This document shows, piece by piece, positions 20,091-48,045 of a DNA stretch of 64,000 bases. The stretch covers positions 1,178,001 to 1,242,000 of the forward strand of contig JAMWBK010000007.1 of assembly GCA_029953675.1 (NCBI GenBank), given 5' to 3'. The notes under the pieces were generated by a model. That model saw nothing but the letters and a program-made list of their open reading frames with translations, was not told the DNA's origin and ran no database searches. The DNA comes from Rhodosorus marinus CCMP1338. Taxonomy: Eukaryota; Plantae; Rhodophyta. Numbering within the stretch: the stretch's first letter is position 1; the number at the start of each line of letters is the position of its first letter. Made by a program: the position numbers and the translations under genes.

Positions 20091-21938
20091 TCAGACTGTG
20101 TTGGCTATGGCTGGACCCTGCGGGGGGTTGTTTCTGGAAAGGGACTTCAAGTACGCGCTTGTCGGCCTCTCCCCAGGCATAGCGGTGCCGTTCGCAGTAG
20201 GCTCTTTGCCAAGCTTCATGCTGACACGGGCAAGCTTTACGTCGTCCAAAGCGACTCCACTCTGGATATCACTACTTGCTGCCTCAACTGGCTGCACAGC
20301 AGCCTTTGCCTCCTCATCCTTCCAAAAGACGTCAACTGGTGGAGGAGGGGTGGTCTCCCTAGGTATATCTTCAATTCGAGATGTGATTGACGTCGTGAAC
20401 CCAACGGCAAAGTTAAAGCGTTCGAGTGCTAGCATATCGATGCCTGCAAGATCCACCAGCCTTTTTATGTTTTTCCCGCCTGATCGGCGAGGTGACTTCC
20501 AGTATGCCCTCCATTCCTTGGCGGTCGGGGTCTTCGTAGCAATGAGTTTCTCCTTTTTCGCCGAACGCGCTGGTGCAGATTTTACAACCACGATCGTTTT
20601 CGGCTTTGGAGGGGCCTGGGGGGTCTCCTCAATTGGTTTTGAAGTAACCTGCTTAGCGCGAAAGACTTGCGCTTTCGCCTTCGCCTCACTGGCGGCTAAA
20701 GGTTTTGCGTCTTGGACAGCGCTCACCGGCACGCCGTTCGAAGCAGCGCTCTCTTCTGTAGTTGCGACTGGGCTAGGAGCCTCTAACACTTCAAAGCCTG
20801 GCTCGGTTTCTTTGGCATCTCGGGCTTGCGATTTTACAACTTTGATCACTCGTACTGGAGCTGCTGGTTCCGGTGTAGCAGGTTTGCTCTGCTCTACGGC
20901 TCCTTCAATCGCAGAATCCGCACTGACGTCGCTTACGAAGGACGCGATCTTCTGGATGTTCGCCGTCCTCTGCTCCGGAATGTCTCCGAACACCGCGTGT
21001 CCTTCCCCAGGAAGCTTAACCAACTCTTTCCGTTGGAACACAGTTGCTTTTTTCATGATCAACTCCGAGTTTGATATGCTCGAGCGGTGGTCGAGCTCCT
21101 TGTGCAGAATTAGCAAATTATCGAGCGTAACTCGTGGCAAACTCTGCTCGAGATCATTGGATAGATCCATAATAAGTGCACCACATGCGCATCGGAGAAT
21201 CGTATTGTACCCACTAAGTGGATCCTCCTTGGAGAACGCAGCCGCTTCGGCGTCGCCGAACATTTTGTCCCAGTCTGTCTTGGAGATCACATCCGGTAGC
21301 TCCCATTCTGGAGTTAGGTTTCGCATGAGGTTGAGCCCACCCTTCACTAATGGCATTGACATCTCTTCAATTCGTACGAGCGGAGAACACAAAATGACTC
21401 CCTTCAGCAAGTCAGCCAAGTCAGGTTTGAGGACTGCCTGCAACGATAACAGTCCACCAAACGATTCGCCGAGCAAGAACAGGGGTGTTCCCGGAGCTAC
21501 CGAGTCCTTGAGTCGCAGCAGAGCAGCTTCAATTTCATCCATGAAGTCTTCCGGTTCCTTGGCATACATGCGAAATCCGTCAATATCGTCGGACTTTCCG
21601 TGAGAAGGGAGATCCAATCCGTGCACAACAGCCTGCGAATCTTTGCAGAGTCCTTCAGCTAGCTCAGCATACCACCCCGAGTGGAACAAAAAACCATGCA
21701 GCACGAGAACGGCGGCAGCGGGCTTTCCTCCAGGAACTCTTCTCCTTTCAAAAACCTCACGAGAAGGATCTCTTGCTGACGTGATTGGCTCCCCATCAAA
21801 ACCAACACTCCAATTCAGCTGGGACATGCTCGTGAGGCCTTTCCGCCACGCGCTAGCCCTCCGCCCTTGTAAGGTTGAAGCTGCATAGTTCAGCTCCTTC
21901 ACTCCAACGCCGCCAACAAATCCAAGCTCACCAGCCAT
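20091..21938 (-). CDS. Monoacylglycerol-lipase/lysophospholipase-like alpha/beta hydrolase with long Ala/Pro/Lys-rich C-terminal extension; probably plastid-targeted
   Basis: HGFLFHSGWY oxyanion region, GLDLPSHGKS, nucleophile elbow GESFGG, acid (ELDHR) and His (GEGHAVF). N-terminus MAGELGFVGG. Confidence 0.85.
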   Translation of the reverse strand: MAGELGFVGGVGVKELNYAASTLQGRRASAWRKGLTSMSQLNWSVGFDGEPITSARDPSREVFERRRVPGGKPAAAVLVLHGFLFHSGWYAELAEGLCKDSQAVVHGLDLPSHGKSDDIDGFRMYAKEPEDFMDEIEAALLRLKDSVAPGTPLFLLGESFGGLLSLQAVLKPDLADLLKGVILCSPLVRIEEMSMPLVKGGLNLMRNLTPEWELPDVISKTDWDKMFGDAEAAAFSKEDPLSGYNTILRCACGALIMDLSNDLEQSLPRVTLDNLLILHKELDHRSSISNSELIMKKATVFQRKELVKLPGEGHAVFGDIPEQRTANIQKIASFVSDVSADSAIEGAVEQSKPATPEPAAPVRVIKVVKSQARDAKETEPGFEVLEAPSPVATTEESAASNGVPVSAVQDAKPLAASEAKAKAQVFRAKQVTSKPIEETPQAPPKPKTIVVVKSAPARSAKKEKLIATKTPTAKEWRAYWKSPRRSGGKNIKRLVDLAGIDMLALERFNFAVGFTTSITSRIEDIPRETTPPPPVDVFWKDEEAKAAVQPVEAASSDIQSGVALDDVKLARVSMKLGKEPTANGTAMPGERPTSAYLKSLSRNNPPQGPAIANTV

Positions 21939-23846: not shown

Positions 23847-24893
23847 TTATTTGCTGGCTTCGGAAGTTGTCAGCTCCTTCACAAATGAGACTACTTCTCG
23901 AATGTTCTCGACACGTCTCTCTGGAGCGTCCTGGAAGACTTGATGGCCTCTTCCGGGAATCCTGACCAGTTTCTTCTTTCCGCTGACTTGAACCTCCTTC
24001 ATGATGAGCTCGGAGTTGGATATGCTTGAGCGTGTATCCTCTTCGTTGTGTAGGATGAGCAAGTTGCGCAGTTTCATATTTCCAAGCGTCGCCTCTACTC
24101 TATCAATAGCTTCGAACATAGACACTGCAAAGGCCAGACGCATCGGTTCTCCGTATCCGACGAGGGAGTCGTTTTGAGAAAGCTCTACCGCTACGGGATC
24201 TCCGAATGCTTCAGCCCAAGTCTTGCCAGACAAATCCTGCCCGGGAGGCACAGCAGTGGCAAACACGTTCCTCACAAGCCTCATGATGGTGAGCACGATC
24301 TTCGACGGAACGATTTCCTTGTTTGGTAGCAGCACAGGTCCACAAAGAACAACACCCTGAAACAGGTCCGCGAACCTTGGGTTTAGATTCAGGAGGAGAA
24401 CCAACAGCCCCCCAAAGGACTCCCCCAGTATGAAAATAGGTGCATCATCTGGCAGCGCCGACCGAAGACGGTCGAGAGCAGCCTCAATCTCTTCCAAAAA
24501 ATCCTCTGGACTTTTCCCATATGCTCGCAGCCCATCAATGTTATCGGACAGCCCGTGCGAAGGAAGGTCAATCGCGTGAACTTCGGTAAGGGCTTCCTGG
24601 CTCAGGTCACGAGCTAGCTCCCAGAACCAGGCAGAATGCCATAAGTAGCCGTGGACAATCAAGAGGCCAGATGCCGGGGTCCCTTCCGGCACCCTCCTCC
24701 TGTAGAAAATCTTCATGGACGGGTCCCTGGATGACGCAACATACTCTCCATTAAATCCCTCCCCAGAGTTTAGCGCCCCCATTCTTACTATGTTGCTTCG
24801 CCTGAGTCGGAAACAGCAACTCTCTTCATAGACCTTCAACCTGGGCTTTACTAGTCCCACACTGCAGACGAAACTCAAGCGCTTCACCTCCAT
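23847..24893 (-). CDS. Monoacylglycerol-lipase-like alpha/beta hydrolase, tandem paralogue; probably plastid-targeted
   Basis: HGYLWHS, DLPSHGLS, GESFGG, EEDTRSSISNS, GRGHQVF. High similarity to the hydrolase domain of 20091-21938. N-terminus MEVKRLSFVCSVG. Confidence 0.85.
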   Translation of the reverse strand: MEVKRLSFVCSVGLVKPRLKVYEESCCFRLRRSNIVRMGALNSGEGFNGEYVASSRDPSMKIFYRRRVPEGTPASGLLIVHGYLWHSAWFWELARDLSQEALTEVHAIDLPSHGLSDNIDGLRAYGKSPEDFLEEIEAALDRLRSALPDDAPIFILGESFGGLLVLLLNLNPRFADLFQGVVLCGPVLLPNKEIVPSKIVLTIMRLVRNVFATAVPPGQDLSGKTWAEAFGDPVAVELSQNDSLVGYGEPMRLAFAVSMFEAIDRVEATLGNMKLRNLLILHNEEDTRSSISNSELIMKEVQVSGKKKLVRIPGRGHQVFQDAPERRVENIREVVSFVKELTTSEASK

Positions 24894-26143: not shown

Positions 26144-28803
26144 CTAATCCGAGGACAAGGATGCGATACCAAGTGGATTTGTCTCTCTATTCGAGGTGGT
26201 TCTAACGTCCGATACCCGTGTTTCACTTGATGACACAGGGTAGGCTGCCGAACTCGCCCCAAACCGGCACATTTTGTAACGATCGTCTTCTGGTCCCCTT
26301 CGAGCTAGTGCGTCCGTCGGAATGCCCCCACCGGTCCGGATGGTGAAGGGGCCATTTGACCCAGTACCGCTGTTGGTTATCTTGGCCTTCCAAATTACCC
26401 CGCGGTAGCCCATCCGAGTTCCGTGCCTCCTCTCGACGAAAGCAGTGAGGGCCTTCGCGTAACCGCTGTTCGAGTGGCGTCTCAGGCCTACGGACATGAA
26501 CGAGGAGTGCATCCATGTCATCTCGAACATCGTCGGATCAATAAATAGATCCCCGTCGGCGGTGACTAACGCGACTTGACCCACGTGATGGAACAGGAAT
26601 GCTGGTGGCATCATAGTGACTGGATCGTGGGCGTTGACCATTCTCCAGGTGCAAGGAACAACCGCGTCGTACTCCTTGACAAATTGGTGATTGCCTGCAC
26701 GCGGACTCCCGTAGGTGTACACGAAGACTCCCTCACCGGGATTCATGGTCTTCGCCGTGTCATAGCTGGACAGAGTGGCCAGAGCGCCACCTAAAGAGTG
26801 TCCAGTGAAGAAGATCGGGCGGGGTTCTAGGCTGTACAACCGCTCTAGCTCCTCCAGAATCCGCCTCCGAACTGTCTTGTACACGCGCATGAAACCAGCA
26901 TGCACTAGAGGTCTGGTAGGACTGCTCCAGCAGCGGGTTCCGTCCATTTCCGCGGCTGGTTGATCGTCCCACATGTGTTCTACGGGTACACGCCCTGTGC
27001 GCAGATCCGTTCCAACGTTCCGCGAAGACGAAGTGCCCCTAAAAGCCACAACAATACGGTCCTCCGCGGCAAGAACCAAGGCGTGCGTGTCCGTGGGCTG
27101 ATCCGAGATGTACGAGACCACCTTATTGTTGTTGTCCCCAAAGTCCTGTTCACGACGGAGATAACAACACATACACAGCCGTGAGTAGCCTGTCGTCTGT
27201 TCCCACGCCGTGCTTCCTAGCGATTGTGATTCACAGCCGTCAACCCACCCTCGGAGATCGAGCTTCCTTGTGATCCTTTCCGTACGAGTATGGAAGCCAT
27301 GCAAGGTTGAAGAGCATAATACAAGTTTCCATAACAAAGCTGGTCTTTTTAAACTTTGGATCGTGATGCCGTTCGAACACTCTGTACCTAAACAGGCTCT
27401 CGGTTGGCTGCAAAGATTCCAGGAAAGGACAGCCGCTTAGCTACGAATTTTCCACTTTCGGATGACTTGGACGTGATGAAACATACGTTGTGACTTTTCT
27501 TGTACCGACACCTGATCAGGTCCGTCAACGTTGGGGCCGACGCGGGTAGCATGAAGAACAGCTGCTGTAGAGCATACGCGGGGATGATCGTTAGGTAGCT
27601 CAGCCTTCCGGATGGAGGCCGAAACTGGTATACACCCTGATACTTGGCTACAAGTATCATCGTGTCGTTGCTCGAAAGCATTATGTTCAATGTCCCGAAA
27701 ACTGTCGTCAGGACAAAAGTCAGGGCCAAATAATAGCGGAACTGCCTGGAGACGAACATGAAACCGACCACCAGGACAGTAAGGGTTAGCTCTCAACCGT
27801 TGATCAGACCCTCCAAAAGCTCGCAACAATGGTCCCTCGATAGAGTTGGAAAGACTTACCTAAAGCCGATCTGGAGTGATCTGTAATCGAGGTAGTCCAG
27901 TGAACGGATGTATCTTGCAGTTACCGTCATTTCACAGGTAATGTACAGGACGACCATAAGCTCTGTGCAGAAATTTGCGACGAGCATGAAGAGGAGCCCC
28001 GGCGAGAAGCCGTCTTTGCTGAAGATGATTTCCATACCGGTAGCTAAGGATGACAGTGGCAGCCAATTCAAGTTGACGTTGAGGAGGAATGACACGGCAA
28101 TTCTTGTTACCATGAACATCCCTAGAATAAACATTTTCGGCCAGTACGTCCAGGGAAACCACTGTCCGCGTGGTGTTCTGAACGAAATAGCAGTCGACCA
28201 GATTTGGAAGAAGATCCCCGTGATTCCCAGACAAGAAGACAGCAACGTCGAAATACGGAGCACCGCCTTCCAAGATTGGTCATTAAGTACCAGTACTGGT
28301 AGGAACACAGTGTTGAAGAACGGAATGTAGATGACCGAGCATGATATCCCGAGGATAAATACATACGCCATTTCCCTCGTCCTCAGCGCCTTTGGGGTAG
28401 CCAAAACGACCACAGAATAGTACACGGTCATGAATGTAAGAGCGACCGCTACCATAATCTCCACGACGAACTCAAAAACTCTGTACCAGAAAGCCGGCTC
28501 AACAATCCAGTAAGTCTCTCCCCCAATCTGTTCTGGGCGTACCCAGATCGTATTTGCTAGAACAAGATAAACGATCGTAGAAATAACCATATAAACTGCC
28601 GAAACAACGTACAACAGCGTCACCTTCGTGAGCTCCGAAGCATGAAGAGTCTCAATCTTCAGTCTTGGCTCCGACACAATAGTCGGCATCGAAAGCCCAT
28701 ACGTTCCAAAACTAGTATCATCTGGAACAGGTATACCTGTGGAGTCATTCAGCTCCTCCAGAGTCAACTCTGGATCCGCTGCGGGCTTCTCTGAGTAATC
28801 CAT
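26144..28803 (-). CDS. Multi-TM (Wntless/TMEM181-like) domain plus class-3 lipase fusion, copy A, 4 exons, ~787 aa
   Basis: Exons 27860-28803, 27487-27745, 27249-27407 and 26144-27145 join in frame across GT-AG introns. About 8 hydrophobic helices. Lipase motifs VAFRGTSS, GFMRVY, FTGHSLGGALA, YTYGSPRAGN, DPVT, RHSN. Confidence 0.85.
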
Positions 28804-29919
28804 CGCTGTCTAACCCATTTAAAAATAATTTAACATTGCCTTCCCCAAGACAACCACTCCCAGCGCAACCACCCGGCTTTCAAACCGCCTGGTCTGCCCC
28901 GGCCCGCCCTACCCCTTTCCCTCCACCCACCCAAACCAGCAAATCCTGGACATCACCCCCGTTCCTTTCTTCACCTCCTTCCTTTCACGCTCAAAAACCC
29001 TCAGTTGTTCCTCAACTTATGATTAAGCCACATCGGTATCCACCCAAAACTTCCTTTCATCCGGTGCGCCTCCCTACCCAAACCCCCCGCCCACCTCCGT
29101 TCCCCACCCTCCCCACCACTATCAGCCCACGTAATCCAACCAACATTAGCCACGGCCAAATCAAACTATTCCCTTCACACCCTCTCCCCCCCCAACCAAA
29201 AAAGGTCAATTTTCAAAACAAAAAACCTAAAAAAACAAAGCCATAAAAAACACTCGCTCGCCCCCTACAACCTATCACCCCCCCCCCTTTTCTTAGAAAC
29301 GTGTTAAAACCCTCAAATTCTACATTTTCTCTGCTGGAAAAGCTGATAAATGAATCTAGCCTGAGTTTTCCGCCCATAAAGTTTGTAAAATACTAATTTC
29401 CACTAATACTATTTCGGGGTGGAGGGGTAGGGGAAGAAATTTGGTTGAAAAATCCATTATTTCTTAAATTTGTACTTATAATTTCTAAATTAAGTATGAT
29501 TATGTTCAATTATGGAAAATATAGTATGTAGTACATTATTTTATTGTATTCAATTTATTTATCGTATGTTGGTGGCGGATTTTTAGGTTGTTTTTTTGGT
29601 AGTGTCGTTGTTTTTGTTTTTTTTTCGGGTGTACGTTGATGTTGGTTTTTGTGCGCGGGGGGGTTTGCTTCGGCGGTGGGGGTGGGGGTGGTCTTTGTCA
29701 GTAGGGCACACTGGTGTGAAGAGTGCGCGAGTTTTGAGGGTTTGAGCCAACAATGTCTGGCTCCTCATCCTTCGTCTCCTGGAGGTACTGCTTGCATATT
29801 TGTATGAGAGCGTAGTATAAACAGTTCGGAAGCTTCGTTTACTCATATTTTGACGCCTTTTGCGTTTAGAATAGATAGGTTTGTTTGGCTTATGGTACAT
29901 GTACAGTTGTCCCTGTTTG

Positions 29920-32531
29920 CTATGGGACGTCCTTATTCGGGTCCGTGTCCTTGTCCTCGAACGCTACTGTTGAATGTGAAGGTCTGATATCTACTCGCCG
30001 CTCCAATTCTGAGCTCTGAGGCCACCCAAGCTTGGCTGACAACGTCTCCGCTCCTCCGCTGGAAACTAAGAACGAGGAGCTCATCGACGTGGATGGCGCC
30101 CGCCGTGAAGATGTCGGGATTATCGCGCTGAATAGGGTGCTTCTTTGTCCAAACTTAAAGGTATCCAATTCGTTCTTCCACACCGCGCATCGCGTTCGTA
30201 CTTTGAGCTCGTCCCGTCTCTCAACGAAGGCTGCGAGTGACTGCGCATATCCACTGTTCGAGTGAGTCGCAAGCCTGAAATTCGGCAGGATCGAGCGCGA
30301 TGCATGCATCCAACCCAGCTCGAACATGGTGGGGTCGATAAAGAGCTCCCCTTGCGCCGTAATCAGCGCTGCTTGTCCGACGTGCCGAAAATAAAGCGGC
30401 GGAGGCATCTTCGTCACCGGATCTTTGGCGTTGATGATCCTCCAAGTTCGCGGAACTCGCTCATTGTACAGGTTCGTAAATTGCTGGTTTCCAACTCTCG
30501 GACTGCCAAAAGTGTAGCAAAACAGTCCCTCTTCCGGCTCCATAGTTCTCGATAGATCATAGCTGCAGAGCGTACCCAGGGCGCCTCCTAAGGAATGTCC
30601 TGTGCAGAAGATCGGCCGCGGCTGTTTTTGGTAGAGTCTCTTCACTTCGGCGACGACAGCTGGTTGAACCGACAGGTAAGCATCCAAAAAGCCTCTGTGG
30701 ACCATCGGCCCTTTGTGCCCACACAAGTTGCTCCCCGTATTCTCGTCGGTGGTACCACCAGCTTCAGCGTGCAACTCCTCCAGGGGACCCATGGACGTCC
30801 TCAGGTCGGTCCCGACATTCCGAGTTGACGAAGTGCCCCTGAAGGCAACCACGATCCTATCGAAAGCAGCATAGACAACGGCATGGGTATCCGTCAAGTT
30901 GTCCGCTGCGTAGAGAGAAACGTTGTACTTTGAGCATCCAAAGTCCTGGACATCGCAGAATTTTGGATGGAGAACGAGATCAGCAAAGGGAAACAATCCA
31001 TTGCGCCAGATTGGAATTGCCATGCGTCGTATTACCATGGGCCTTCGCGTCTCCTTCTTGTGCTTCTTACCATAAGAATAGGCTAGCCATCCAAGATTGA
31101 ACAATGTGACACAGGTCTCCAACACAAAGCTATTCCGTTTGAACTGCGGCTGTCCCCGCTTCTCCAACGATCGATATCTGTACTGACCTTCTGTCGTCTG
31201 TTGCACGTGAAGAAAGCCATTAGTGGTGGAAAGTTGTGCAAGAGAGACGCGTCACAGACGTACGTTTTGAATCTGCTCATCGCGGCATCGAAGCAGGTCA
31301 GAAATGCTTCTGGCAGAGGCCGGTAGCATGTAGAACATTTGCTGGAGTGTGAATGCTGGTAAAACCGCAACGTACGCGAGGCGGCCGGAAGCTGGACGAA
31401 AGTTGTGGCGACCAGTGTACCTCGAGATCCCGTAGAGAACGTCAGTACTTATCAACGTCGCCGTTAATATGCCGAAAAGCGTCAGGAGCAACATCGTTAC
31501 GCCCAAGTAGGAACTGAACTGCCTACATACCCGAATAAACACGGATCACAACCATCAGCAAAACCATATTTCACCAATCGCATGCTCCACAACGTGCCAC
31601 GGCAAAGAGCTCACCTGAAACCGATTTGGAGAGATCTGTACTCGAGGTAGTTCAACCTTAGCAGATGTCGATAAGTTAAGACAAGTTCAAATATTAGGCA
31701 ACAAAGGATCCCGAACTCAAGCACCGCGTTTGCCCCGAGCAAGAATATGACATTTTCGCTGTAGGTTACGGTCTGGAGCCTCAATTTCATGAGCGCTACA
31801 ACCAGTGAACAAGCTGGAATCCAGTCAAAGTTGACCCGAATCACCGTAGATGCCAGAATTCTCGTCATAAAAAATACCGCAACAACGGCCATCTTTGGGT
31901 AGTAGGACAACGGCATCGACTGATGCCTCGGGAGACGGAAGGAGATAATTGTTGACCAGATATAGAAGATCATACCCGTCGCACCGAGACATCCCATGAG
32001 GATTGTCGATACTTCGATGTGGTTTGAGAGCATATCAAAGTTAAAATTGTCAACAGACTGGAAGGTGTTCTCCGTAAGCGGCACCATGATGCAGGTTACG
32101 GAAACTCCGAGCACGAGCACGAAAAGCATTTCTCGAGTTCGATTCTTCCTTGACTGCGAAAACACCGTAAGTGCGTAGAAGACTGTCGAGATCCCCGTGA
32201 AAAGGCACAAAATCGACTCAATGCTGAAGTCCACGATACGAAACCACTGCGGTGGATAATGGTACCAATAGGTACTACCGCCATCCAGCACTATAGACTG
32301 CAACCACAAAGTTTTCGACATTGTGAAGTAGAAAGTGTTATAAACAATCATGAACACAATAGATACCAGGAACAAAGCAGAGACACGACCGAGCTCACAG
32401 GCGTGTAGCGTTTCGATTTTCAGCATAGGCACGGATGCCGAGTGAACGACAGATTGTGCGTTCGACTCAATCTCATCACCGGTTGAGTCGAGGAGTTCCG
32501 AGTCTATAGTCAGCTGAAGCGTAGAGTTCAT
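29920..32531 (-). CDS. Multi-TM (Wntless/TMEM181-like) domain plus class-3 lipase fusion, copy B, 4 exons
   Basis: Exons 31615-32531, 31264-31522, 31036-31197, 29920-30945, with the same intron positions and phases as copy A. CTGHSLGGALG, FGSPRVGN, DPVT, THSN. Confidence 0.85.
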
Positions 32532-33065
32532 CCTTGAACCCTCTGAAACAAACACGAAGCCACAAGTTCGTTCAACCGCCTCGCCCGGCACCCTCGAGAC
32601 TGGGCCAACGTCCAGTTCCGAAGACTCACTCGCCTCCCCACAGTCCGCTCAAACTTTTCTCGACCCATTACAACCATACCAACCAACCTATTCACCACAT
32701 CCAAGCAACCTAAACACTTGATACTCATCTTTAAAAGATCAGGGCTTGGAGGCCTCGAACTCCGACAGAGCCTCAGCTCCACCCTACCAACCGGGGGCCG
32801 CACTTTTACACAATGACCTTCCCTCTTCCAAACCGATCATATCCATTGGCTAATCCCCCGGTACAGGGAATATAACTTTTCAAAATAATTCGGAAGCAAT
32901 TTCTATACTTAGAAATTCTCGATACTGTCAACAAAAAAGTATGAATATGAATGTGAACGTGAATGTGAATGTTCACTCACCTGACCAATACTTGGCTAAG
33001 TTTTTAATTAAAAGTATTCCAATATGTTTATGTGAATCTTGGAAATGATACCGATTCACAATGTT

Positions 33066-33220
33066 TTCATTTTAGCTTGTCTCCGTTTATTGATGTGTGC
33101 CTGATAGTTGAGATACTGGTGGGCGGTTTGGCCCTGTGATAACAGTGCATTCATCTTAGCCTGTCTCCGTTTGTTGATGTGTGCCTGATATTTGGTGGCC
33201 GGTTTTGGCCCCGCAATCAC
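33066..33220. repeat. Imperfect ~84-bp tandem duplication
   Basis: TTCATyTTAGCyTGTCTCCGTTTrTTGATGTGTGCCTGATA begins at both 33066 and 33150. Confidence 0.85.
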
Positions 33221-34391
33221 ACTATCGTGTATGGCAAGGTTGGTCGTTTTTTTGAAAGTATGTCTAAGCCATACAGGCTATATCTTCTTTAGCCATGCAA
33301 CCTGAATCTTTTTGGAAGCTCTTGCTGCAGTTGTGGAATCTTTCAGCCTTCTACCTTACGGGTCATCCTCTTAACTTCACCCAATCGCAATCCACAACTT
33401 GTATTGGCAGCGTTCTACTGTAACGAGGGAATTCAACGAAAAATTGTCAAAGCTGAAACCTTCACATTCAAAAAAAACTTTGGTTCTACAATCCAAGTCC
33501 CTCGTTAAAACTACTCGTGCTCCCACAACCACGACTACATATACCTATCGTTTATTCTTCTATCTTACTTAGGCCTCAAGTTAAGGTCATCATCGTTTCG
33601 ATGGGAAACCGCTTCTGCAGTTTACTATGCGCGTTCCAAGTTCACAGGCAAATTCAGGAAACATGTCATCACCACCTCGACGTGCAATCAACCTCGTGGT
33701 GCAACATTCCAAATTCTCGTTATTGCGTAATCATTCGCCCCCGAAACGACGACTTGTAGTTTGGGGTTTTGCCATATCCGCCAGATAAAAAAATACGCGT
33801 CCGAATACGTCCGATATTAGTTTAGTTTTTCTGAATCACGTAATAATTATTAAATTTATGCAGACGAGCGTCGGATATAGGTTTATTAGACTCGAATTGG
33901 AAACAAAAAATAGGTTTTATCTGATAGCTGTCGTGTAACGATCGATAGAAGTTACATATTCTTCAATCAACGACAGATGATGATTGGATATCAATCTTCT
34001 TCTTCGTGACACGGTGGACTTCTTCAAAATATTTCAACGTTCTGAAAAAGCACTGTGACGTCTCCACCTTCCAGCAATGTCCGGCTATGCAAAATTATGC
34101 TCGGGCTGTGCCAAAATCTCTGGAGGTGCAACACCCTTTTGAGCTTAATCGTTATTGCACATCCCGATGGAGCAAGAGTATAAGCACGATGGGCAAACTC
34201 GATATTCCCAGGTTAGCTGGAGAGAAGAAGGAAAAAGATAGAGAAGAAGAAGATAGAATTGGGATATATTACCTAATTTGGGAGTAATTAGGGGGGAGTA
34301 AAACCCGAAGTATGGAATAATTTGAGTAATACCCAGCTGGCAGTATGAGACGTGATAAGCACAAGATTGTGTATAACAGCCTGTTGAACTC

Positions 34392-34510
34392 AGAAGCAAT
34401 CATGATTTAATATATACGAGAGTGACAGCTTGTCATTCCGAGAAGTAATCATGATTCAATACTGGAACCGGAGATGATTGACGATTAGACTAATGGTCTG
34501 AATCAATATT
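34392..34510. repeat. Degenerate ~48-49-bp tandem repeat
   Basis: AGAAGyAATCATGATTyAATA at 34392 and 34441, with a third degenerate copy (CTGAATCAATAT) at ~34498. Confidence 0.55.
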
Positions 34511-36457
34511 GGACGGTTTATCGGACAGGTGTTTTCGACAACTTACAACCGCATGCTGACTAGTTTTGTACAAATATTCAATATTATATGTATTTTATCA
34601 TGGAGAGAATTTATCAGACGAGTCAGATAACGGTCATTGGACGGTTTTATGACTACCCTCCCCGTCTCCATCTGCTGTGACAACTGCAGGTTTTCCCGTT
34701 GGCGGAGCAGCCTGTGACCGTAGCTAGCTGTCTTGACTATTTGGATGACAATATGGAGGATGAGTTATATACGATCGCCTCCAAACCCCACCGGTACCAC
34801 TGTTCGCTGTATTTCTACATATGGGATAGTGTGTGATATGTCTCATGCTTGAAAAAGAGGATGGTAGAAATGGTTTGGAGAGGAGCAAGAAGTATTCGAA
34901 AGCTGGTTACCCCCTTTTTCATGGAGTTCTTGGGGAGCGGCCCGGTTAGTCAAGGAACGCAGCCCAGGGTCAATATTTTTTTTTTGGTTGTCCTCCACAT
35001 CACGCAGAGAGTGTAGATTATATTTTAGTTTTCCCATTGGTTAGCAAGCGGCGTCTGGACCCCGGGGAAGGTGGTCTTAAGTCAGCTTAGAGCGAACATA
35101 GAGTAGTGGTATTGCGCTGCGGTAGGTAGCTGCCGAATAAAGGCTACGGGGTTGGAGCCTTCGATTTCGAGAATTTCGTCGATTTTCGACTCCAGAGTTT
35201 CAGGTTTTGGTTACCTGTTAAGCTCGCCTACGTGGTTGCCTCGTCGCTACTCTACCGTCAACTTCCTTGTCAACCGCAGACTGTGCCGCTTAAGGTACCC
35301 TGCCGTTGCCGGCTTCGATTCTCCAGCTCGGTTGTTCTGACACTATAGGACACGCACAACCTGTCTTGCTCAAAAGCGTGAAAGAGAAATTGTCGTCTGA
35401 GCACATAACGTACAAGCTATTCTAGAGACCTCCTTGGTGGGGCCTGCAAAGAATGAACTTGGAATCTGTCGATGCGCTCGGAAACCTCGGAGGCGTAATA
35501 TGGCTACAGTCAAAACATAGCAAGGCTCTCAAAGCGCTGCTCGTCACTTCCGCGAGCTTAAGCGGCGAGGTGGGCGATCACCTTCCACTGTGCTCGGTCA
35601 ACCCCGGCCAGGAGTCGCTTTCATATGAATGAATCTGTTTAATCGTAGACTGAAAGAAAAACAGCCGAGCAGACTATGCGCGGCGAAGATATCGCGCCTC
35701 CAACATCAAAGCAGCGTTCATACGCCCCACAGCAAAGAAACTTAAAGGTGGAAACGAGCAGAGACGATCAGCTTTCGTGCCAAGGGGGGAGGGGACTCCC
35801 AAGATTTTGTGGTACCCCGCTTGAGAACTTCACTCTTTTCTACCCCTTTTTACAATGCCTCTATAAGGTTGACTGGCACTAGATTTATCCATTTACCCAA
35901 AACACTCCAAAAGCCAGTTCAGAATAGTAGATAAGATTGTTCAGGGGTTCTGAAAAAGCGCGGGAAGTTCATGTAGTTTGTGTTGCTTATTGTCCTCACA
36001 CCTCAGCTCTCAACCCTCTATATACAGTGGTTTCTGAGGTTTTCTTAGAGCTTTACCGTTATACACTATTTTACAATATTTTTGCACTCGTATTTGTTAT
36101 TGTGGTACCGCTCCAGGTGAGAGTGCCGCCCCCTTGGTTCGGCGGAACAACTCCCGAAGCCAACGAGAGCCAACGGAATCCATAAACCCAAAGCACTCAA
36201 CGACCAGAGGTACTAACAGGCGATGAGCTAGAGCCGAAGCACGAATGCCTAGGGAAGACAAAGCCCGCGCATAGTTCAACTTTCATACCCCGCGGATACT
36301 CAGGAAAGTGTTTCAGGGAGACTACTTTCTGGGTATGACTTAAGTTGCACTTCGTCACATCGATAGTGGTCTACTAATATTTAATATAGCCTATATAACC
36401 CTGTGCAACGATGAACTCGTCACCAAACTTGGCTCAAATCCTCCCATTGTCGGGCGA

Positions 36458-39024
36458 TTATGATGTTCCAATGGAGGTGCCAAGTGAGGTATCTTGGGTG
36501 AGCTCTGTACCGTCAGTTCCAACAGCCTTGAAGTTCCACAGTCCAATATGCTTCACAAACCACTCTCCGTGTCGCTGAAGGCAAAAGTTTGAGAAATATT
36601 CGTGGTAGGCTGCTCGTTTGTGTCTCCTGAAGCTCAGCTCCTGGACTCCACAGTTGCCGAATGTTGAGTGGAGCCACGCCATCTCGTAAAGGCCTGGGTC
36701 AATGTACAGGTGTCCGGCATCTGTCAACAACGCAGCTTGGCCAACGTGCCGAAAAAACAATGGAAGAGGCATTTTCGTGACGGGGTCCTTTGCTGCGATG
36801 ACTCTCCAGTGATGTTTGACCAGCTGATCATACTCTTGCTTGAAAAGCTTGTTCCCTACCCGAGGGCTCCCAAACGTGAAGACGAAAACCGCATAGTCAG
36901 GCTTCTCCTTTTTCACGTCAAAGCTGCATAGAGTTGCCAGAGCACCTCCGAGCGAATGTCCGCCGAAGAACAACGGACGGCGGTGATGCTCCATCAGACG
37001 ATCAATCTCATCTAGAATCTGTTCCCGTACGGACGTGTACGCCATAAGAAACCCAGCATGAACCAACTGCTTACGTTGGAACATCGCCCTGCGTCCCGAA
37101 ATTGGTTTGAACTCGCGTTCAGAGTGCGCCGACAGCGCAGTTGCCGGCAAGAAGGCCACGTTCAAGTCCGTCGCCAAGTTCTTCAGCGACTGAGTCCCTT
37201 TGAAAGTCACTACAATCCGGTCAACTGCTTCGAAAATAAGCGAGTGCGTATCCGTTTCCTCGTTGCTCACATACTTTGTGATTCGAAAACGGTCGTCGTC
37301 GAAGTCCTGTTGGAGAGGTGAAAGATCGTGATCCCTGTCAGCTTGAAGTGAACAACTTTCGGTAGCAGTTGAGGCAAACGTACAATCGGCGCTAGAGGAG
37401 TCTTCGCCTTACTACCGTATGTGGACGGTAGCCAGCTGAGATTGATCATGATTGCACACGTCTCGGATACGAAGCTCCTGCGATTGAAAGTCGGGTCATC
37501 GGGTCGTTCCAGTAGCCTATTGGAAAACTGTTTTTCTGACATCTACCAAACACCACAAGTAGAAACAAGACCTTCGGTAAGACCTAGTGGCTGTTGTAGC
37601 TCGCTCAGTGAGTCTGTGAAATTCTTACGTTCTGCTCCTGCAGCTCGCAATGACATCGAAGGGCCTTGTTGAACGGCGGCGCTCTGGCCGGCAGCAGGAA
37701 GTAGAGCTGTATCATCACGTAGGCAGGGACGATTAGAGCGTAGGCCAGCTGGCCGTATTGAGCCTGGAAGAAGGTATAGCCCCAGAACTTTGTACTCAAT
37801 AGGATGAGATCGTTTTCAGTAGCAAACATGCAAACTGTCGATACTACGATTGTGTACACAAAGGTCGCCGCTGTATAGTACGCGAACTGCCTGAGAAGGG
37901 CGTCGAACGCCACGCAGAAGTTTTTGGGTATTAGCCGTCTGACGAGTTTGTTTGGTTTCCATTGCAGTGAACCCCTTTCATACTTACATAGCTGCAATTC
38001 GGGTAGTCCTACGTTCCAGATAGTCCAGCTTCGTGACGTAGCTTTTCAGCAAACCCATTTCAAGTGAGATGATCAAAATCACCAACGTTTCCATCACGAG
38101 ATTCGCAATGAGCGCGAAAAGCTGTGAGGGACCAAGCCCACTTCCAGATCGATTGATCTTCCCGAGCCCAACCACGAAAGACAGGAACGGGATCCATGAG
38201 AAGAAAATCTTGGAAAACCCCCCGAGCAATGCACGGACGAAGACGTGAAGAAATAATAGTATCATTTTGACATAATAGGATTTTCCCAATCCTGTTTCCG
38301 GTTCCTTCCGTAGCGATATGGCCATGGACCAGACGAATAGTGAGATTCCACCTGAACCCAGGACTCCCGCAACCACAGAGGTTGCTGTTGTTAGCGCGAG
38401 AAAGGCTTCAAAGGATATAGAGAACGCATTCGACACCTGCAGAAACCCGTCCTGGAACAACGGGATAAGCAGTACGGAGGTGCAGAATCCCAGAATGAGA
38501 ACGAAGACCATCTCACGAGTGCGCGCCGACCTCGGCACTCGAAGAACCGCAATCATGTACAGCGTAGAAGTGACGAACAGCATGAAAGCGAGAAGTGCCT
38601 CCATGACTGTCGTAAACGTATCAAACGAATTAGGCGCAAGTATAAACCCATACTCATTGCCTCCAAACGTGCCCGAGCCGAACCAGACCGTGTTCGCAAG
38701 CACAATAAATGCAATCGCGAATACAAAAGTTAACAGGAAACAAGTGACGAACACGGTGATGCTGCGTGTAAGCTCCTTTCCGTGGATGACTTCAATCTTC
38801 AGCTGTGGCTCTGTAGTCGTGAACAAAGTGGATTTCATTGCACGCTCAGTAGTGGTCATCATTATTGGTAACTGCAATTGGGGATCCGTTGTTTGCCCAC
38901 GACCAGCCTCAAGCTTGTTCCCTTCATTCAAAGGATACGTCTCTTGAGCAGAACACGAACGACCTGACGATGATGGACTGGGTTCGGAATTACAGGGCTT
39001 GTAAATCTCATCCGTAGAGTCCAT
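36458..39024 (-). CDS. Multi-TM (Wntless/TMEM181-like) domain plus class-3 lipase fusion, copy C, 4 exons
   Basis: Exons 37988-~39024 (start uncertain), 37629-37890, 37384-37542, 36458-37306, with the same intron positions and phases as copies A and B. FGGHSLGGALA, FGSPRVGN, DPVT, RRHK. Confidence 0.85.
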
Positions 39025-43201: not shown

Positions 43202-44302
43202 ATGCAGAGCGTTAAGTTGGGATCCCAAGGCTTGCAAGTAAGCAAGATGGGATATGGGTGTATGGGTCTCACAACTGCGTATGGACCCAAACAACCCGAC
43301 GCAGAAGCAATTAAACTTCTGAAGAAGTCTACGGAGCTTGGCATGTCTTTCTGGGATACTGCCAATGTCTATTGCTACCCCGACATTTCAAAACTTTTGA
43401 GATTTCAGTCACCAGTTACATGCCAGGAGGAGATTCTTGGTCGAGCGATAACGGATATCGGAAGGGAGAACGTAACCATTGCGACGAAGACCGGGTTGGT
43501 ACTTGGCGTCTTCCCAAAGATTTCCTTGACCGCGAATGGTGACCCAAGTTTCATCCGGAAACAGTGCGAAATGTCGCTCAAGAGACTCAAGGTAGACTAT
43601 CTAGATCTCTTCTACATTCACCGAATAGATCCGAACATCCCCATCGAAATCACCATGGCGACAATGCGGGATCTCGTCCATGAGGGAAAGGTCAAATACG
43701 TTGGACTCTCTGAATGCTCAGCGGCGACGCTCAGAAGGGCCCACAAAGTGCACCCTATTTCCTGTATTCAGATGGAATGGTCCCTTTGGTGCCGAGAAAT
43801 TGAAAAAGAAATCGTGCCAACCTGCGCTGAACTGGGTGTGGGCATTGTTGCGTACTCGCCTCTTGGAAGGGGGTTCTTCGGAGGTGAGCTGAGAACTACT
43901 TCAGACCTGAAGAGTGCGGATTTTCGGAGCAATACTGGACGCTTTCAAGAGGAGAACCTAGAGAAAAATCTCGCCCTTCTCGAAAAAGTCGAAGCGCTAG
44001 CAAGGACCAAAGGTGTTTCAAGCGCGCAGCTGGCGCTATCCTGGGTCCTCCACAAAGCGGATCTACTCAATGGTGCAGGGGTGGTGCCAATACCAGGCAC
44101 GACAAAGGAAAAGAACCTAATCAGTAACGCCGGCGCCGTGAACATCGTCCTCTCCGCGGAGGAAATAAAAACTCTGGAACAAGCAGTTGACCAGAACCCA
44201 GCGCATGGAGCTCGCGGCCAGAGTGGGCAGGTGCAGTGGGAAAATGACAAGAATCCGCCGCTGTCGCCGTCGGACGCGGCAAAGTATAGGATTAAAGTAT
44301 AG
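43202..44302 (+). CDS. Aldo-keto reductase (AKR13/auxin-induced-like subfamily)
   Basis: LGSQGLQVSKMGYGCMGL, WDTANVY, IATK, SLKRLKVDYLDLFYIHRID, GKVKYVGLSE, VAYSPLGRG, VVPIPGTT. Intronless. Confidence 0.93.
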   Translation: MQSVKLGSQGLQVSKMGYGCMGLTTAYGPKQPDAEAIKLLKKSTELGMSFWDTANVYCYPDISKLLRFQSPVTCQEEILGRAITDIGRENVTIATKTGLVLGVFPKISLTANGDPSFIRKQCEMSLKRLKVDYLDLFYIHRIDPNIPIEITMATMRDLVHEGKVKYVGLSECSAATLRRAHKVHPISCIQMEWSLWCREIEKEIVPTCAELGVGIVAYSPLGRGFFGGELRTTSDLKSADFRSNTGRFQEENLEKNLALLEKVEALARTKGVSSAQLALSWVLHKADLLNGAGVVPIPGTTKEKNLISNAGAVNIVLSAEEIKTLEQAVDQNPAHGARGQSGQVQWENDKNPPLSPSDAAKYRIKV

Positions 44303-44914
44303 CTGGCATGTATTTGCCCCATTGAGAAAGACCTCCGAATAGTCATCTCTTCACGTCAGACTCCGCAACAGCCAAACTGGACCCCACGGAGCCGCTGGTA
44401 GACAAAAAGCAGGTGCCGAGACGTCGCTGCCTCCTCCTCTAGCGGAAGGTGGTTTACTTCTCCACGGGGATTTGCCCTTACCGCACACCACAGCTAGAAC
44501 TAGGAAGCAAACCCTTGCGGATGTAGTGATAAAGATGAAAACGATCTGTCCAATACTGAAACTACCTTGAAGTCTGTTGTACTCTGTCTTCTTCTGTCCA
44601 AGAGAGAAAGCGTCTGGACGCCGATCCAGTATCCGTCGTTAACCTCAAGATCACAAAATGGGACAAAGAAACGGCGGGCGGTGTTTTACATAACTCCCCC
44701 ATCAGCGACTTCGGACTCTGCAGAAACTTCGCCGCTTGGAGGGCATCCTTCGAAACCTTTTTGTGAGCTGTTCTTGCGACCCTACGCGTTGGTTTAGTAT
44801 CTTAGGGAAGGAAATTTCCATGTGCTCATCGCTCAGGAAGTGCTCGGAGAGGGTGGGGCAGGTGGAAAAGACACGAATGATCATGTTCGCTTCTTAACAG
44901 TAGCGAAGCTAGAG

Positions 44915-45853
44915 ATGGGTGGAAGCGGAGGAGTTCGTGGGCCGAAAGCGAGACGCGTGCTGGAGTTTTACAGAGTTCACTTCGGCGTTTCTCTGCCGTT
45001 CAATGTGCTTTGCGATGGGACGCTGATTCACTTTGCTCTAAAGCATAAGCTTTTCTTAAAGGAAGCTCTTCCTGTACTATTTGGGCGGCAAATTGCTGCT
45101 CATGTAGTGGTCTCTTCTTGTGTTGTCTCTGAGCTCCGTTCTCTCGGAGAAGAGTTCTCAGCTGCATCTCTAATGGCTAGCCGAGCTAGAAGGGTAGATT
45201 GTCCACACGCGAACAAACGTGTTGCAGCATCGGAATGTGTTCTTGAGCTCTTCAAGGCGGAGAAGCATGGGATGCTTCTCGGGACGGTTGATAAGGAGCT
45301 TATCAGTACCGCCAGAGCTATTGGAGGCGTCCCGATCGTCACGATTTCGTCAGGATCATTGATCTTGGAGACGCCATCGAGGCAATCTCGCAGCCTTGCC
45401 TTGGAGATTGAAAGGAACAAGAGGAAAAGATCCAGCTTGCCTCCTCCAAAGCCAGCCGCTGAAGACCCGTTGAAGCCAAGATTTCGACGCAGAAAGGCCA
45501 GGGGGCCTAATCCGCTCTCAGTGAAGAAGAAGAAGACAGCGGAATCGGCCGTGGGAAAGAAAAAGAAGAAGAAGAAAAACAAGATCCAAACACCTGAAAA
45601 CACAGAGGAGAAGCAAACCCAAGGTCTGGAAGCTAACCATGCGAATAAGAGCAACGCGGGCGCCGATGATGGACAACCAGAAACCAAAACCGAAAAGGCT
45701 GGAATCAGAAAACGAGGAAAGCGAAAGAGAAAACGAGACTCAGAACTTGAAAATCCAATCCAAGAACCGGAGGCTCTTCCGGAACTAGAAAAGGAATTTA
45801 GGAAGCGGCATCGGCGCAAGCGAAGATCCGCCAAAAGCGTCAAACCCGAGTAG
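44915..45853 (+). CDS. UTP23: rRNA-processing protein UTP23 (PIN/Fcf1 domain plus basic tail)
   Basis: FYRVHFG...FNVLCDGT, VVSSCVVSELRSLG, CPH....ASEC, RRKARGPNPLSVKKKK. Likely ATG at 44915. Confidence 0.88.
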   Translation: MGGSGGVRGPKARRVLEFYRVHFGVSLPFNVLCDGTLIHFALKHKLFLKEALPVLFGRQIAAHVVVSSCVVSELRSLGEEFSAASLMASRARRVDCPHANKRVAASECVLELFKAEKHGMLLGTVDKELISTARAIGGVPIVTISSGSLILETPSRQSRSLALEIERNKRKRSSLPPPKPAAEDPLKPRFRRRKARGPNPLSVKKKKTAESAVGKKKKKKKNKIQTPENTEEKQTQGLEANHANKSNAGADDGQPETKTEKAGIRKRGKRKRKRDSELENPIQEPEALPELEKEFRKRHRRKRRSAKSVKPE

Positions 45854-45942
45854 AACCGGAGTTTTATGTGGTCATCTATTTAATACAAAAGCGCAGTTTA
45901 TCTTATTACATTTCTCTAGCCGATTTCTGTCGAATTCTCGCC

Positions 45943-46272
45943 CTACTGTTTCATCGATGTTGAAAATTCCTCCAAAGCACCAAGAAATGACTTGGCGATG
46001 ACGTCCGCAACTCCAGCGAGATCTTTTACGCTTCCACCAAACGCTTCAGCTGCGGATTCTCCTCCTGCAATTGTCTGTACGCGAATATTCAATCTGTCCT
46101 CACTTGGATGAGGGATTGAATACCCAGCAAACTCAACGCCAGGTCTTCTAGCGAGCATGTATCTCACAGCGTTCCCCATAGTATGATCTTCCCCTCTCAA
46201 AACAATCGTCGCACATGATGGATCGTCGCCAGCTACCTCAAGGCAAAGGTCTTCACCTCCAGAATTGGCCAT
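45943..46272 (-). CDS. POLR1D: RNA polymerase I/III shared subunit AC19 (RPAC2)
   Basis: EDHTMGNAVRYML...PGVEFAGYSIPHPSEDRLNIRVQT is the AC19/RPC19 signature. Confidence 0.92.
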   Translation of the reverse strand: MANSGGEDLCLEVAGDDPSCATIVLRGEDHTMGNAVRYMLARRPGVEFAGYSIPHPSEDRLNIRVQTIAGGESAAEAFGGSVKDLAGVADVIAKSFLGALEEFSTSMKQ

Positions 46273-46504
46273 GACGATTCCTAGCGTAGCAGAAATTTTA
46301 ACACCCTACTGAAAACTAATGTCCAAGAAAGGATTTCTACTCTCCTCGACTAGCCTCTATTTCCTAACAAACCTTCCTACTGCGACCTAGCTTGCGGATA
46401 GGTTAGTCCGGGCACTTCACTCCTTCGGACAAATAGCAATCCCAATCGTCGGTTTCGAGGTCGAAAAGCGAGAGCGGGCGACACCCCGATGTCACAGAGA
46501 TTTT

Positions 46505-47403
46505 ATACTTTTTTATACTTTTTTTTTACTACATCTAAGATTATGGAGCCTAGAATACGCCTTTTATGCACAGATGTGACCATATGACCCCAAAAGTTTC
46601 CTCAGAACATTTAGGATATGTCTTCAACGTATATCTAGAGTTTTTCACAGGAAGCTGGCCCCATTGACAGATGAGCTCAGCTAATGAAGAGGTGAACACG
46701 GTCTGTCCATATAGCCGGGACTATAGTGGCATCCACAGGTAGTGGCGCTTATGAACGCCAAGACAAGTAGAGCATCTAAGGAGCCCTCTCAACAGGGTAG
46801 CAAACTAGATTCTCTAAGGGAAAAATACGCGTTGTAAACGAATCGCGTTGACAGCTTGTTGGGGATTACGGCGCCAGAGCTTACGATTGATTCCTGCCCT
46901 CACCGAGCCCAAGGCCTCTCCTTTGTGCTCAAGACGTTGAGTAACTTCCGCAAGAAATTCTGCTGCCGCCATCTCATGCCGTCCAAATGGCTCCAAAGCA
47001 AAATGGACTAAGATGAAATAAATCTGATCGCCCAGAGGGTCTTGCACAACGGGCTTGCTTTCCAGCTTGAGGTTTATGTGCTAATCTCTGTTCTTTCGAG
47101 CCTTCTCTGATGTCTTCCCGGGTGAGTCTTAGCCGATTTCAGCGCCAAGGAGGCAAGCGACGCGCGCGGGCGCCAGATTCTTCAGCTAGGAAACTCGCAA
47201 TAACCCGATAAGCAACCTGCCCGTGTCACACTGGGTACCACGAAAAATGGTAGGGATGGTTGATCATCCACGTAGCAAACTCGTAGAGGGCCGCCGTGGC
47301 TCGTCGTTCATCGTTTCCGGAAGGCTTGACAACCCTGCATGTCAAGTTTCACAATGGACTTTCACTTTTTTATACGGTTTAAGCGTCTCATACTTTTTTA
47401 TAC
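46505..47403 (-). mobile_element. 5'-truncated non-LTR retrotransposon remnant (RLE-endonuclease type) with A-tail and 14-bp TSD
   Basis: Identical ATACTTTTTTATAC at 46505-46518 and 47390-47403. T9 tract at 46519-46527 (poly-A on the minus strand). Minus-strand peptide FILVHFALEPFGRHEMAAAEFLAEVTQRL...LWRR..QQAVNAI resembles the C-terminus of RLE-type LINEs (F.PLA.E..G....A..FL.....RL...QR.NA). Upstream frame contains stops. Confidence 0.55.
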
Positions 47404-48045
47404 CTTTAATACTCGTTAGTACTCGTTAGTACTTTCAAAATTCCATACTTTTAAAAAATTTTCCTTAGTGTACGACGATTTTAGATTCCACAAACTTCTC
47501 GGTGTCCCACCATCCTCGCTGTACGACCACTCCCTTAGGCTGTTCTGCTCTCCTCGGCTTTGCCCGAACCGATTTGGAACGTTGTCATTTCACTCAGGTC
47601 TGTGAACGAGACACGAATTGTATAGTCCATGAGTTCACTACAAATGCCGAGTGTACAGCACATCGCAGCCTGCCAGCGTCATTCAATGAGAATAGTGTAG
47701 TTGTGTCACCAAGTTTTTTTCATAAGAAGCAAGTGCTTGCCAGTCAGTGACTAGGCGAACGAAGCTAAAGTGTTTGGGCCGTAGAGTTGAGAGTCGTTCT
47801 GTAGGGAAGCTGAAATTGTATCCTTCGGTCGCTGCTATTGTCAAGGTAAAAGCTTTCTGAAACAGCTTGACGCTACGACCGTGTGCATCTTAAATTCGGA
47901 GTTTGCATTCAATCCCGCCAATGTGGAAGTGGAAGTCGTTCGTATAATTAGTACTTTGCTTTACGGGAGGCCGATGTGCGATGTGTGCCCCGTGCCCAAA
48001 TTAGTGGCTGTCCATAGGCAAAAACTTGGTATTTACATTTGTTCA

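Follow-up and report, generated by a model that had tools for sequence, protein, structure and literature searches.

Here we describe three neighboring genes in a 64,000-nucleotide stretch of nuclear DNA from the red alga Rhodosorus marinus (referred to below as the window). Each is predicted to join a membrane domain of eight transmembrane (TM) helices to a class-3 lipase. The genes, designated A, B, and C, are intact, and all lie on the minus strand between positions 26144 and 39024. Judged from their sequences and those of related transcripts, they are expressed, selectively maintained paralogues of a family of putative integral-membrane class-3 (Ser-Asp-His) hydrolases. The membrane domain is very probably homologous to the Wntless/TMEM181 family (PF06664), with the Rhodosorus proteins forming a divergent branch. 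Together these make the architecture a new combination of two known families.

Three membrane-lipase genes in Rhodosorus marinus

Gene models were rebuilt from open reading frame (ORF) fragments, the sequence itself, and mutual alignment. For gene B, the model agrees at every residue with the R. marinus protein NDN08_004546 in NCBI. The proteins begin with a short disordered segment, after which come the membrane domain of eight helices, a ~40-residue linker, and an alpha/beta-hydrolase domain of the Lipase_3 type whose catalytic triad is complete. Hydropathy analysis gave seven to eight hydrophobic segments per protein, and the AlphaFold models contain eight TM helices. The coordinates are as follows.

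Gene A, 26144..28803, minus strand: Wntless-like eight-TM domain plus Lipase_3, 787 residues, four exons
Gene A exon 1, 28803-27860, minus strand: N-terminus and TM1-TM6; ends in phase 2; donor GTAAGT
Gene A exon 2, 27745-27487, minus strand: TM7-TM8 and LPASAP juxtamembrane motif
Gene A exon 3, 27407-27249, minus strand: cytosolic linker (predicted) and first lipase-domain helix (SFVMETC...FNLAWL)
Gene A exon 4, 27145-26144, minus strand: lipase core and unconstrained C-terminal tail
Gene A triad codons, minus strand: Ser571, 26797-26795; Asp628, 26626-26624; His678, 26476-26474
Gene B, 29920..32531, minus strand: Wntless-like eight-TM domain plus Lipase_3, 787 residues, four exons
Gene B exon 1, 32531-31615, minus strand: N-terminus and TM1-TM6
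Gene B exon 2, 31522-31264, minus strand: TM7-TM8
Gene B exon 3, 31197-31036, minus strand: linker and first lipase helix
Gene B exon 4, 30945-29920, minus strand: lipase core and tail
Gene B triad codons, minus strand: Ser564, 30594-30592; Asp621, 30423-30421; His674, 30264-30262
Gene C, 36458..39024, minus strand: Wntless-like eight-TM domain plus Lipase_3, 768 residues, four exons
Gene C exon 1, 39024-37988, minus strand: longer N-terminus and TM1-TM6
Gene C exon 2, 37890-37629, minus strand: TM7-TM8
Gene C exon 3, 37542-37384, minus strand: linker and first lipase helix
Gene C exon 4, 37306-36458, minus strand: lipase core
Gene C triad codons, minus strand: Ser604, 36955-36953; Asp660, 36787-36785; His715, 36622-36620

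All nine introns are GT-AG, 66-114 nt in length, and occupy equivalent alignment positions with phases 2, 0, and 0. An initial annotation of this DNA had described common intron positions and phases, as well as about eight TM helices followed by a Lipase_3 domain with GHSLGG, DPVT, and a His motif, and the rebuilt models agree with it on both counts. The paralogues are divergent, with TM-part identities of 41% (A-B), 34% (A-C), and 28% (B-C), but clearly homologous (tblastn E 1e-54 to 1e-172). No fourth copy of the family was found in the window by tblastn.

The lipase domain and its catalytic triad

All three proteins match Pfam Lipase_3 (PF01764) far above its gathering threshold of 22 bits, with E-values of 1.4e-30 for A (106.5 bits), 3.4e-32 for B (111.7 bits), and 3.1e-32 for C (111.8 bits). 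Each contains GHSLGG, (H/K)DPVT, and a downstream His. The closest solved relative is the Rhizomucor miehei lipase 1TGL (phmmer E 1.4e-20). In gene B, the Ser of GHSLGG corresponds to Ser144 of 1TGL, the Asp of KDPVT to Asp203, and the His of THSNSGY to His257, and these triad residues are invariant or nearly invariant across 29 family members. The lipase domain of the full-length AlphaFold model resembles fungal class-3 lipases and feruloyl esterase in Foldseek, with E-values down to 2.6e-11 and target-normalized template-modeling scores (TM-scores) of 0.57-0.72. A, B, and C are thus predicted to be acyl-hydrolases with an intact, active-looking Ser-Asp-His triad. The fungal enzymes, such as R. 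miehei 1TGL and Aspergillus niger FaeA, have this catalytic fold and triad in common with the algal domain. However, they are secreted, soluble proteins that lack a membrane domain, whereas the algal lipases are membrane-fused.

Relationship of the membrane domain to Wntless and TMEM181

The membrane domain was assigned by way of its predicted structure and its relatives. The AlphaFold model of the gene B TM part (mean predicted local distance difference test score, pLDDT, 79; predicted TM-score, pTM, 0.80) has eight TM helices, and a Foldseek search with it placed human Wntless (WLS) in all of the top four PDB positions (8tzr, 7drt, 7kc4, and 8tzs; E 6e-4 to 9e-3). Class-A G-protein-coupled receptors (GPCRs) and Frizzled rank below WLS, their fold similarity having E-values of 9e-3 or more. 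A HMMER search of 1.84 billion representative sequences with a profile of the Rhodosorus TM domains returned 95 matches, and nearly all of the long ones carry GHSLGG ~200 residues downstream, which indicates that these relatives share the architecture of a TM domain followed by a lipase. When 62 relatives were scanned with Pfam, 43 matched Lipase_3 and 18 matched PF06664. Three of them exceed the PF06664 gathering threshold of 28.3 bits, namely P0042 (36.6 bits), P0019 (34.4 bits), and P0030 (30.8 bits), and the consensus of the family reaches 39.5 bits (E 5.3e-10). The PF06664 alignments of the relatives are collinear over TM2-TM7; for the three above-threshold relatives and the consensus they extend collinearly over about 210-235 of the 247 profile positions. 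The Rhodosorus proteins are in turn tied firmly to these relatives, with an hhalign probability of 100 and an E-value of 1.9e-46 over 357 columns between the Rhodosorus profile and the rest of the family, and a HMMER E-value of 1.7e-29 between the Rhodosorus TM profile and P0019. It is the combination of the Foldseek ranking, the PF06664 matches of relatives and consensus, and the hhalign link that argues for homology to WLS and TMEM181.

Several results weigh against this assignment. None of A, B, and C matches PF06664 at E<=1 in a Pfam scan, and a Rhodosorus-only consensus has no match at E<=10. HMMER profiles built from the Rhodosorus proteins or from the broad family retrieve no WLS from the PDB sequences. 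When the family was aligned by hhalign to the single human WLS sequence (checked against 7DRT), the E-value was 0.08-0.14, with TM2-TM3 alone aligned, and a rhodopsin control gave 0.2. The Foldseek TM-scores to WLS are just 0.41-0.45, with class-A GPCRs close behind. The initial annotation had aligned the three proteins themselves with the WLS/TMEM181 core. This likeness is upheld through the relatives, the consensus, and the Foldseek ranking; as a direct match of A, B, and C to PF06664 it is not, and the structural comparison favors WLS in rank while giving modest scores.

These same observations, namely the missing direct match, the GPCRs trailing WLS closely, and the non-significant alignment to human WLS, would be expected if the TM domain were a convergent, generic bundle of seven or eight TM helices that is no true kin of Wntless/TMEM181. 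We consider this very improbable. Three independent relatives and the consensus exceed a curated threshold with collinear alignments, the Rhodosorus proteins are linked to those relatives as described above, and WLS takes every one of the top four Foldseek ranks. In addition, no other seven-TM (7TM) family appears among the 25 most-matched Pfam families listed for the 62 relatives. The GPCR families 7tm_1, 7tm_2, 7tm_3, and Frizzled are likewise absent from that list, and they have no match in A, B, or C.

Transcript support, selection, and intron retention

Contigs and transcript ORFs from related Rhodosorus strains support the splice junctions at the RNA level. Contig L001 (3262 nt; JGI sample 3300017118) derives from another Rhodosorus strain and has 82-93% DNA identity to gene A. 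Its alignment to gene A falls into three blocks, with introns 1 and 3 missing exactly at the model junctions (27860/27745 and 27249/27145), while intron 2 (27486-27408, 79 nt) is kept at L001 positions 1300-1379. Because introns 1 and 3 are absent, L001 appears to be a partly processed transcript bearing both the TM and the lipase halves, and removal of the 79-nt intron leaves a single ORF of 784 residues. For the gene B orthologue, the transcript ORF P0018 spans introns 2 and 3. For gene C, the 769-residue MMETSP transcript ORF P0145 is collinear with the entire model at 82% identity with one gap. A further MMETSP ORF, P0004, is a full-length fused protein of 753 residues from another paralogue.

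Comparison of gene A with L001 gives a ratio of nonsynonymous to synonymous substitution rates (dN/dS, Nei-Gojobori) of 0.22 overall, with 0.21 for the TM part, 0.10 for the linker and lipase, and 1.03 for the C-terminal tail. Both halves are therefore under purifying selection. The earlier proposal that all three copies stayed intact is consistent with the complete ORFs and triads, the dN/dS values, and the transcripts.

That the models wrongly join two genes, one for the TM half and one for the lipase half, or that some copies are pseudogenes, is next to impossible: prokaryote-style gene callers do cut the orthologous contig L001 into two ORFs (P0001 and P0014), and gene A intron 2 is retained there, but the reading frame is unbroken once that intron is removed, P0004, P0145, and the NCBI model of gene B are fused at full length, no fewer than 43 red-algal proteins show the fusion, and dN/dS lies far under 1. 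Transcripts spanning both halves, together with purifying selection, exclude both versions.

Intron 3 of gene B (30946-31035) is 90 nt long, in frame, and free of stop codons, such that its retention would add 30 residues. Two ORFs from other strains, P0006 and P0018, likewise read into introns. Taken with the retained intron 2 of L001, this suggests that intron retention is frequent in the TM-lipase family.

Distribution and family history

All relatives with a species name come from red algae, including Pyropia, Porphyra, Porphyridium, Erythrolobus, Palmaria, Gracilaria, and Hildenbrandia. Homologue searches with a broad alignment and with the consensus also returned red-algal proteins only, although their word index limits the reach to other eukaryotes. 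As far as these searches reach, the family is confined to red algae.

Within R. marinus there are at least seven paralogues at four loci of assembly GCA_029953675.1: the present array of three, two genes in tandem on contig 3, and one gene each on contigs 4 and 6. In a neighbor-joining tree the Rhodosorus copies group together, and for each an orthologue exists in other strains. The sister of gene A is NDN08_003305, from a different contig (support 100). Bootstrap values on the deep Rhodosorus nodes are low or unreliable, and we use only this pairing and the orthologue pairs. The initial annotation had derived the three genes from an old tandem duplication. A simple triplication in place is rejected, since the closest relative of gene A is elsewhere and the paralogues are spread over several loci. 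Instead, the array belongs to an expansion that is old and specific to this lineage, and that comprises dispersed as well as tandem copies.

At the contig 3 locus (L002, JAMWBK010000003.1:1854534-1877236), NDN08_003305 stands in tandem with another TM plus Lipase_3 gene of 760 residues. This pair adjoins two tandem full-size ABC transporter genes of the ABCG/PDR type.

Predicted topology and the conserved face

In WLS a large luminal domain, the GOLD domain, is inserted between TM1 and TM2. The corresponding loop in the Rhodosorus proteins is a beta-hairpin of 18-19 residues, and in most relatives it is 9-36 residues long. WLS_GOLD (PF21883) has no match in the algal proteins, while human WLS as a control gave E 1e-73. 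The initial annotation was therefore right that the luminal Wnt-binding sandwich is missing. Three relatives (P0032, P0040, and P0054) have inserts of 73-187 residues between TM1 and TM2, where WLS has GOLD, and these look low-complexity or Pro/Ser-rich.

Homology to WLS, with its eight TM helices, and an excess of Lys and Arg in the TM2-3, TM4-5, and TM6-7 loops and after TM8 lead us to infer that both termini are cytosolic. This would place the lipase on the cytosolic face of an endomembrane.

Conservation is concentrated on that side of the membrane. When a 29-sequence alignment was mapped onto the model, 24 of the 27 positions of the TM domain and linker with at least 80% conservation fell on the predicted cytosolic side, and mean conservation was 0.48 on the cytosolic versus 0.36 on the luminal side. 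The most conserved motifs of the TM domain (RT.EQ.W, HSYR, FY.PK, DY..R.KQIGFRFF, and LPA(D/S)A) are all on the predicted cytosolic face. The full-length AlphaFold model has a pTM of 0.76 despite 136 disordered residues, and this predicted arrangement suggests that the TM and lipase domains are held in a fixed orientation.

Just ahead of TM1 there is a conserved amphipathic stretch with the motif P.LKIETLHA.EL (gene A residues 45-58, with B and C aligned). Its K/E positions are ~85% conserved family-wide, and it bears a loose, weak likeness to IIENMSTKKL at the N-terminus of human WLS.

Possible modes of action

The reading we prefer, at somewhat better than even confidence, is that of a membrane-docked, cytosol-facing lipase for which the WLS-like bundle serves as a positioning and possibly regulatory platform. 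The bundle would be a fixed docking site, perhaps also an allosteric regulator, that keeps the active site of the lipase against the cytosolic leaflet. There the lipase would cleave a glycerolipid such as diacylglycerol (DAG), triacylglycerol (TAG), a phospholipid, or a galactolipid. If a lipid does bind in the intramembrane cavity, its role would be secondary and modulatory. We favor this reading because the conserved residues lie on the cytosolic face beside the lipase, because the cavity of WLS opens towards the lumen, and because the two domains are modeled as a single unit.

Some points count against it. We infer, rather than observe, the topology, localization, substrate, and coupling of the domains, and where the active site would lie with respect to the membrane is a supposition. 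Moreover, Glu 272 of gene B (E272, in TM6) is 93% conserved, with Glu aligned in A and C, and it is membrane-buried in the luminal half of the bundle. Along with two conserved prolines, also on the luminal half, it makes up the only three highly conserved positions on the luminal side. These residues may mark or line a functional cavity.

A broader, evolutionary reading is that the Wntless/TMEM181 fold is an ancient lipid-handling module that was kept in red algae as an obligatory lipase partner, selecting, presenting, or gating a specific membrane lipid that is then hydrolyzed, and that the metazoan Wnt carrier was derived later from a lipid-binding ancestor of this kind by addition of GOLD. 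We put this forward only tentatively, as an outside possibility.

A receptor-enzyme arrangement is somewhat less probable still. Here the 7TM bundle would sense a luminal or extracellular ligand, or a property of the membrane, and switch the cytosolic lipase allosterically. The output, on an equally doubtful footing, would be a lipid messenger, e.g., a free polyunsaturated fatty acid for oxylipins. The fold is GPCR-like, the conserved cytosolic face adjoins the enzyme, and the at least seven paralogues have divergent luminal loops, which is typical of sensor families. Proteins with a 7TM domain and a C-terminal lipid enzyme also occur in protists and choanoflagellates (GPCR-PIPK; PMC12716839). 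On the other hand, there is no known ligand, the luminal loops are short, neither evidence of a G-protein-type motif nor a 7tm Pfam match was found, and signaling has been shown for no GOST protein (PMC12716839).

The initial annotation had suggested that the bundle is a carrier wired to a deacylase, i.e., that it binds the lipid or acyl chain of a cargo and passes it to the fused lipase for deacylation. The TM domain does belong, on the evidence above, to the same family as WLS, whose cavity holds the palmitoleate of Wnt and a phospholipid (PMC9711517), and both the conserved buried Glu in TM6 and the rigid two-domain model would fit a transfer of this kind. However, the large intramembrane cavity of WLS and TMEM87A opens to the lumen and, by way of a TM5/TM6 slot, to the outer leaflet, and it is shut off from the cytosol (PMC9711517). 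Since prediction places the lipase in the cytosol, a hand-off from cavity to lipase would be awkward. The algal proteins also lack the GOLD domain, by which the protein portion of a cargo is held, and their bundle is least conserved in its luminal half. We regard this as unlikely, a shade more so than the receptor-enzyme.

Finally, the lipase could face the lumen of a vacuole, a lysosome-like compartment, or a secretory compartment and degrade internal membranes or lipids, as Atg15 does. The topology is itself a prediction, and the TM7-TM8 luminal loop also has several Arg residues. This is improbable, since WLS homology with eight TM helices implies cytosolic N- and C-termini, Lys and Arg are enriched in the loops listed above, and the proteins have no signal peptide.

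Comparison with known membrane proteins and lipases

Like Wntless (WLS/GPR177/Evi), the algal proteins have a TM1 followed by a GPCR-like 7TM bundle, and Wntless is both the best Foldseek PDB match of the algal TM domain and a family-level match to it through PF06664 over TM2-TM7. They also have in common the motifs E..(V/I)..LGIS....IP in TM3 and (I/L)(G/I)FRF(F/K)F after TM6. The two differ in what is attached to the bundle, with a GOLD domain of ~180 residues in Wntless and, in the algal proteins, the short hairpin plus a C-terminal predicted catalytic lipase. Wnt is metazoan, and the algal proteins have no Wnt client; their conservation is on the cytosolic face rather than in the cavity.

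TMEM181 (GPR181), the other founding member of PF06664, is matched by the algal family at the profile level. It is set apart by its description, according to which it has GOLD and no enzyme domain (PMC9711517). More generally, GOST proteins (WLS, TMEM181, TMEM87, GPR107/108, GPR180, and TMEM145) have a GOLD domain on the luminal side, inserted after TM1 and ahead of the 7TM bundle, which the algal proteins lack.

The closest functional analogues are DAGL-alpha and DAGL-beta, in which, as predicted for the algal proteins, a polytopic N-terminal membrane anchor precedes a cytosolic Lipase_3 domain. The four TM helices of these sn-1 diacylglycerol lipases are unrelated to WLS. The algal proteins instead have eight helices of the PF06664 type, and are not DAGLs by the measure of a four-helix anchor. 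The GPCR-PIPK proteins ("GPCR-bigrams") resemble the algal ones in having an N-terminal 7TM domain and a C-terminal lipid-modifying enzyme (PMC12716839). They differ in belonging to another 7TM family, and their enzyme is a kinase, whereas that of the algae is a hydrolase. Our literature search brought up no 7TM fusion of this type with a lipase.

Genomic neighborhood

Directly downstream of the three genes are two paralogous alpha/beta-hydrolase genes, at 20091-21938 (minus strand, 615 residues) and 23847-24893 (minus strand, 348 residues). Both match Pfam Hydrolase_4 at E ~1e-30 and are of the monoacylglycerol-lipase/lysophospholipase type, so that a span of 19 kb holds five genes of lipolytic type. 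Conserved linkage to these Hydrolase_4 genes was rejected, as it is missing at three other paralogue loci. A wider lipid-gene cluster was rejected as well, the other neighbors being ordinary or housekeeping nuclear genes. Those at 43202-61385 comprise an aldo-keto reductase, a UTP23/Fcf1-like protein, a Y-family DNA polymerase, a Myb/REVEILLE-like factor, a MutY-like protein with HhH and NUDIX_4 domains, and a CPSF73-like protein.

The 3.8-kb interval between genes B and C (32600-36457) is ORF-poor, with a reduced GC content of 0.44-0.46 and one tiny tandem repeat. No tRNA and no copy of the lipase family was found in it; a degenerate fourth copy was rejected as tblastn gave no match there. 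tRNAs and large tandem repeats were also sought in the region and none were found. Just upstream of the gene A start there is a Pro-rich ORF of 136 residues (28836-29246, plus strand) and a 17-nt pyrimidine-rich tandem repeat (28953-28986). These are probably low-complexity sequence of the promoter or the 5' untranslated region rather than a gene.

Novelty and significance

Our literature searches, including those on red-algal class-3 lipases and on GPCR-bigrams with a lipase, found no paper on an architecture that combines a WLS/TMEM181-like domain with a lipase. In the databases these proteins are labeled "hypothetical", "fungal lipase-type domain", or, misleadingly, "PLA1 DAD1, chloroplastic". 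At least one relative (P0021) already has both Pfam labels in its precomputed annotation.

With the red-algal relatives included, the range of PF06664 now extends well beyond animals. A recent survey detected neither WLS nor TMEM181 in choanoflagellates (PMC12716839), which makes a red-algal PF06664 clade unexpected. Such a clade would either place the origin of PF06664 much earlier or imply horizontal transfer. Beyond Wnt secretion, little is understood of GOST/WLS-like 7TM proteins, and their proposed common role is the handling of hydrophobic cargo embedded in the membrane. A WLS-type bundle that forms one polypeptide with a lipid hydrolase, in algae that have no Wnt, would be a natural experiment on the dealings of this fold with lipids. 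The family is thus relevant to the fields of GOST proteins and Wnt secretion as well as to that of algal lipids. For algal biology, it represents a multi-gene, selectively maintained membrane-lipase family whose members are candidate enzymes of membrane-lipid turnover or of the release of fatty acids.

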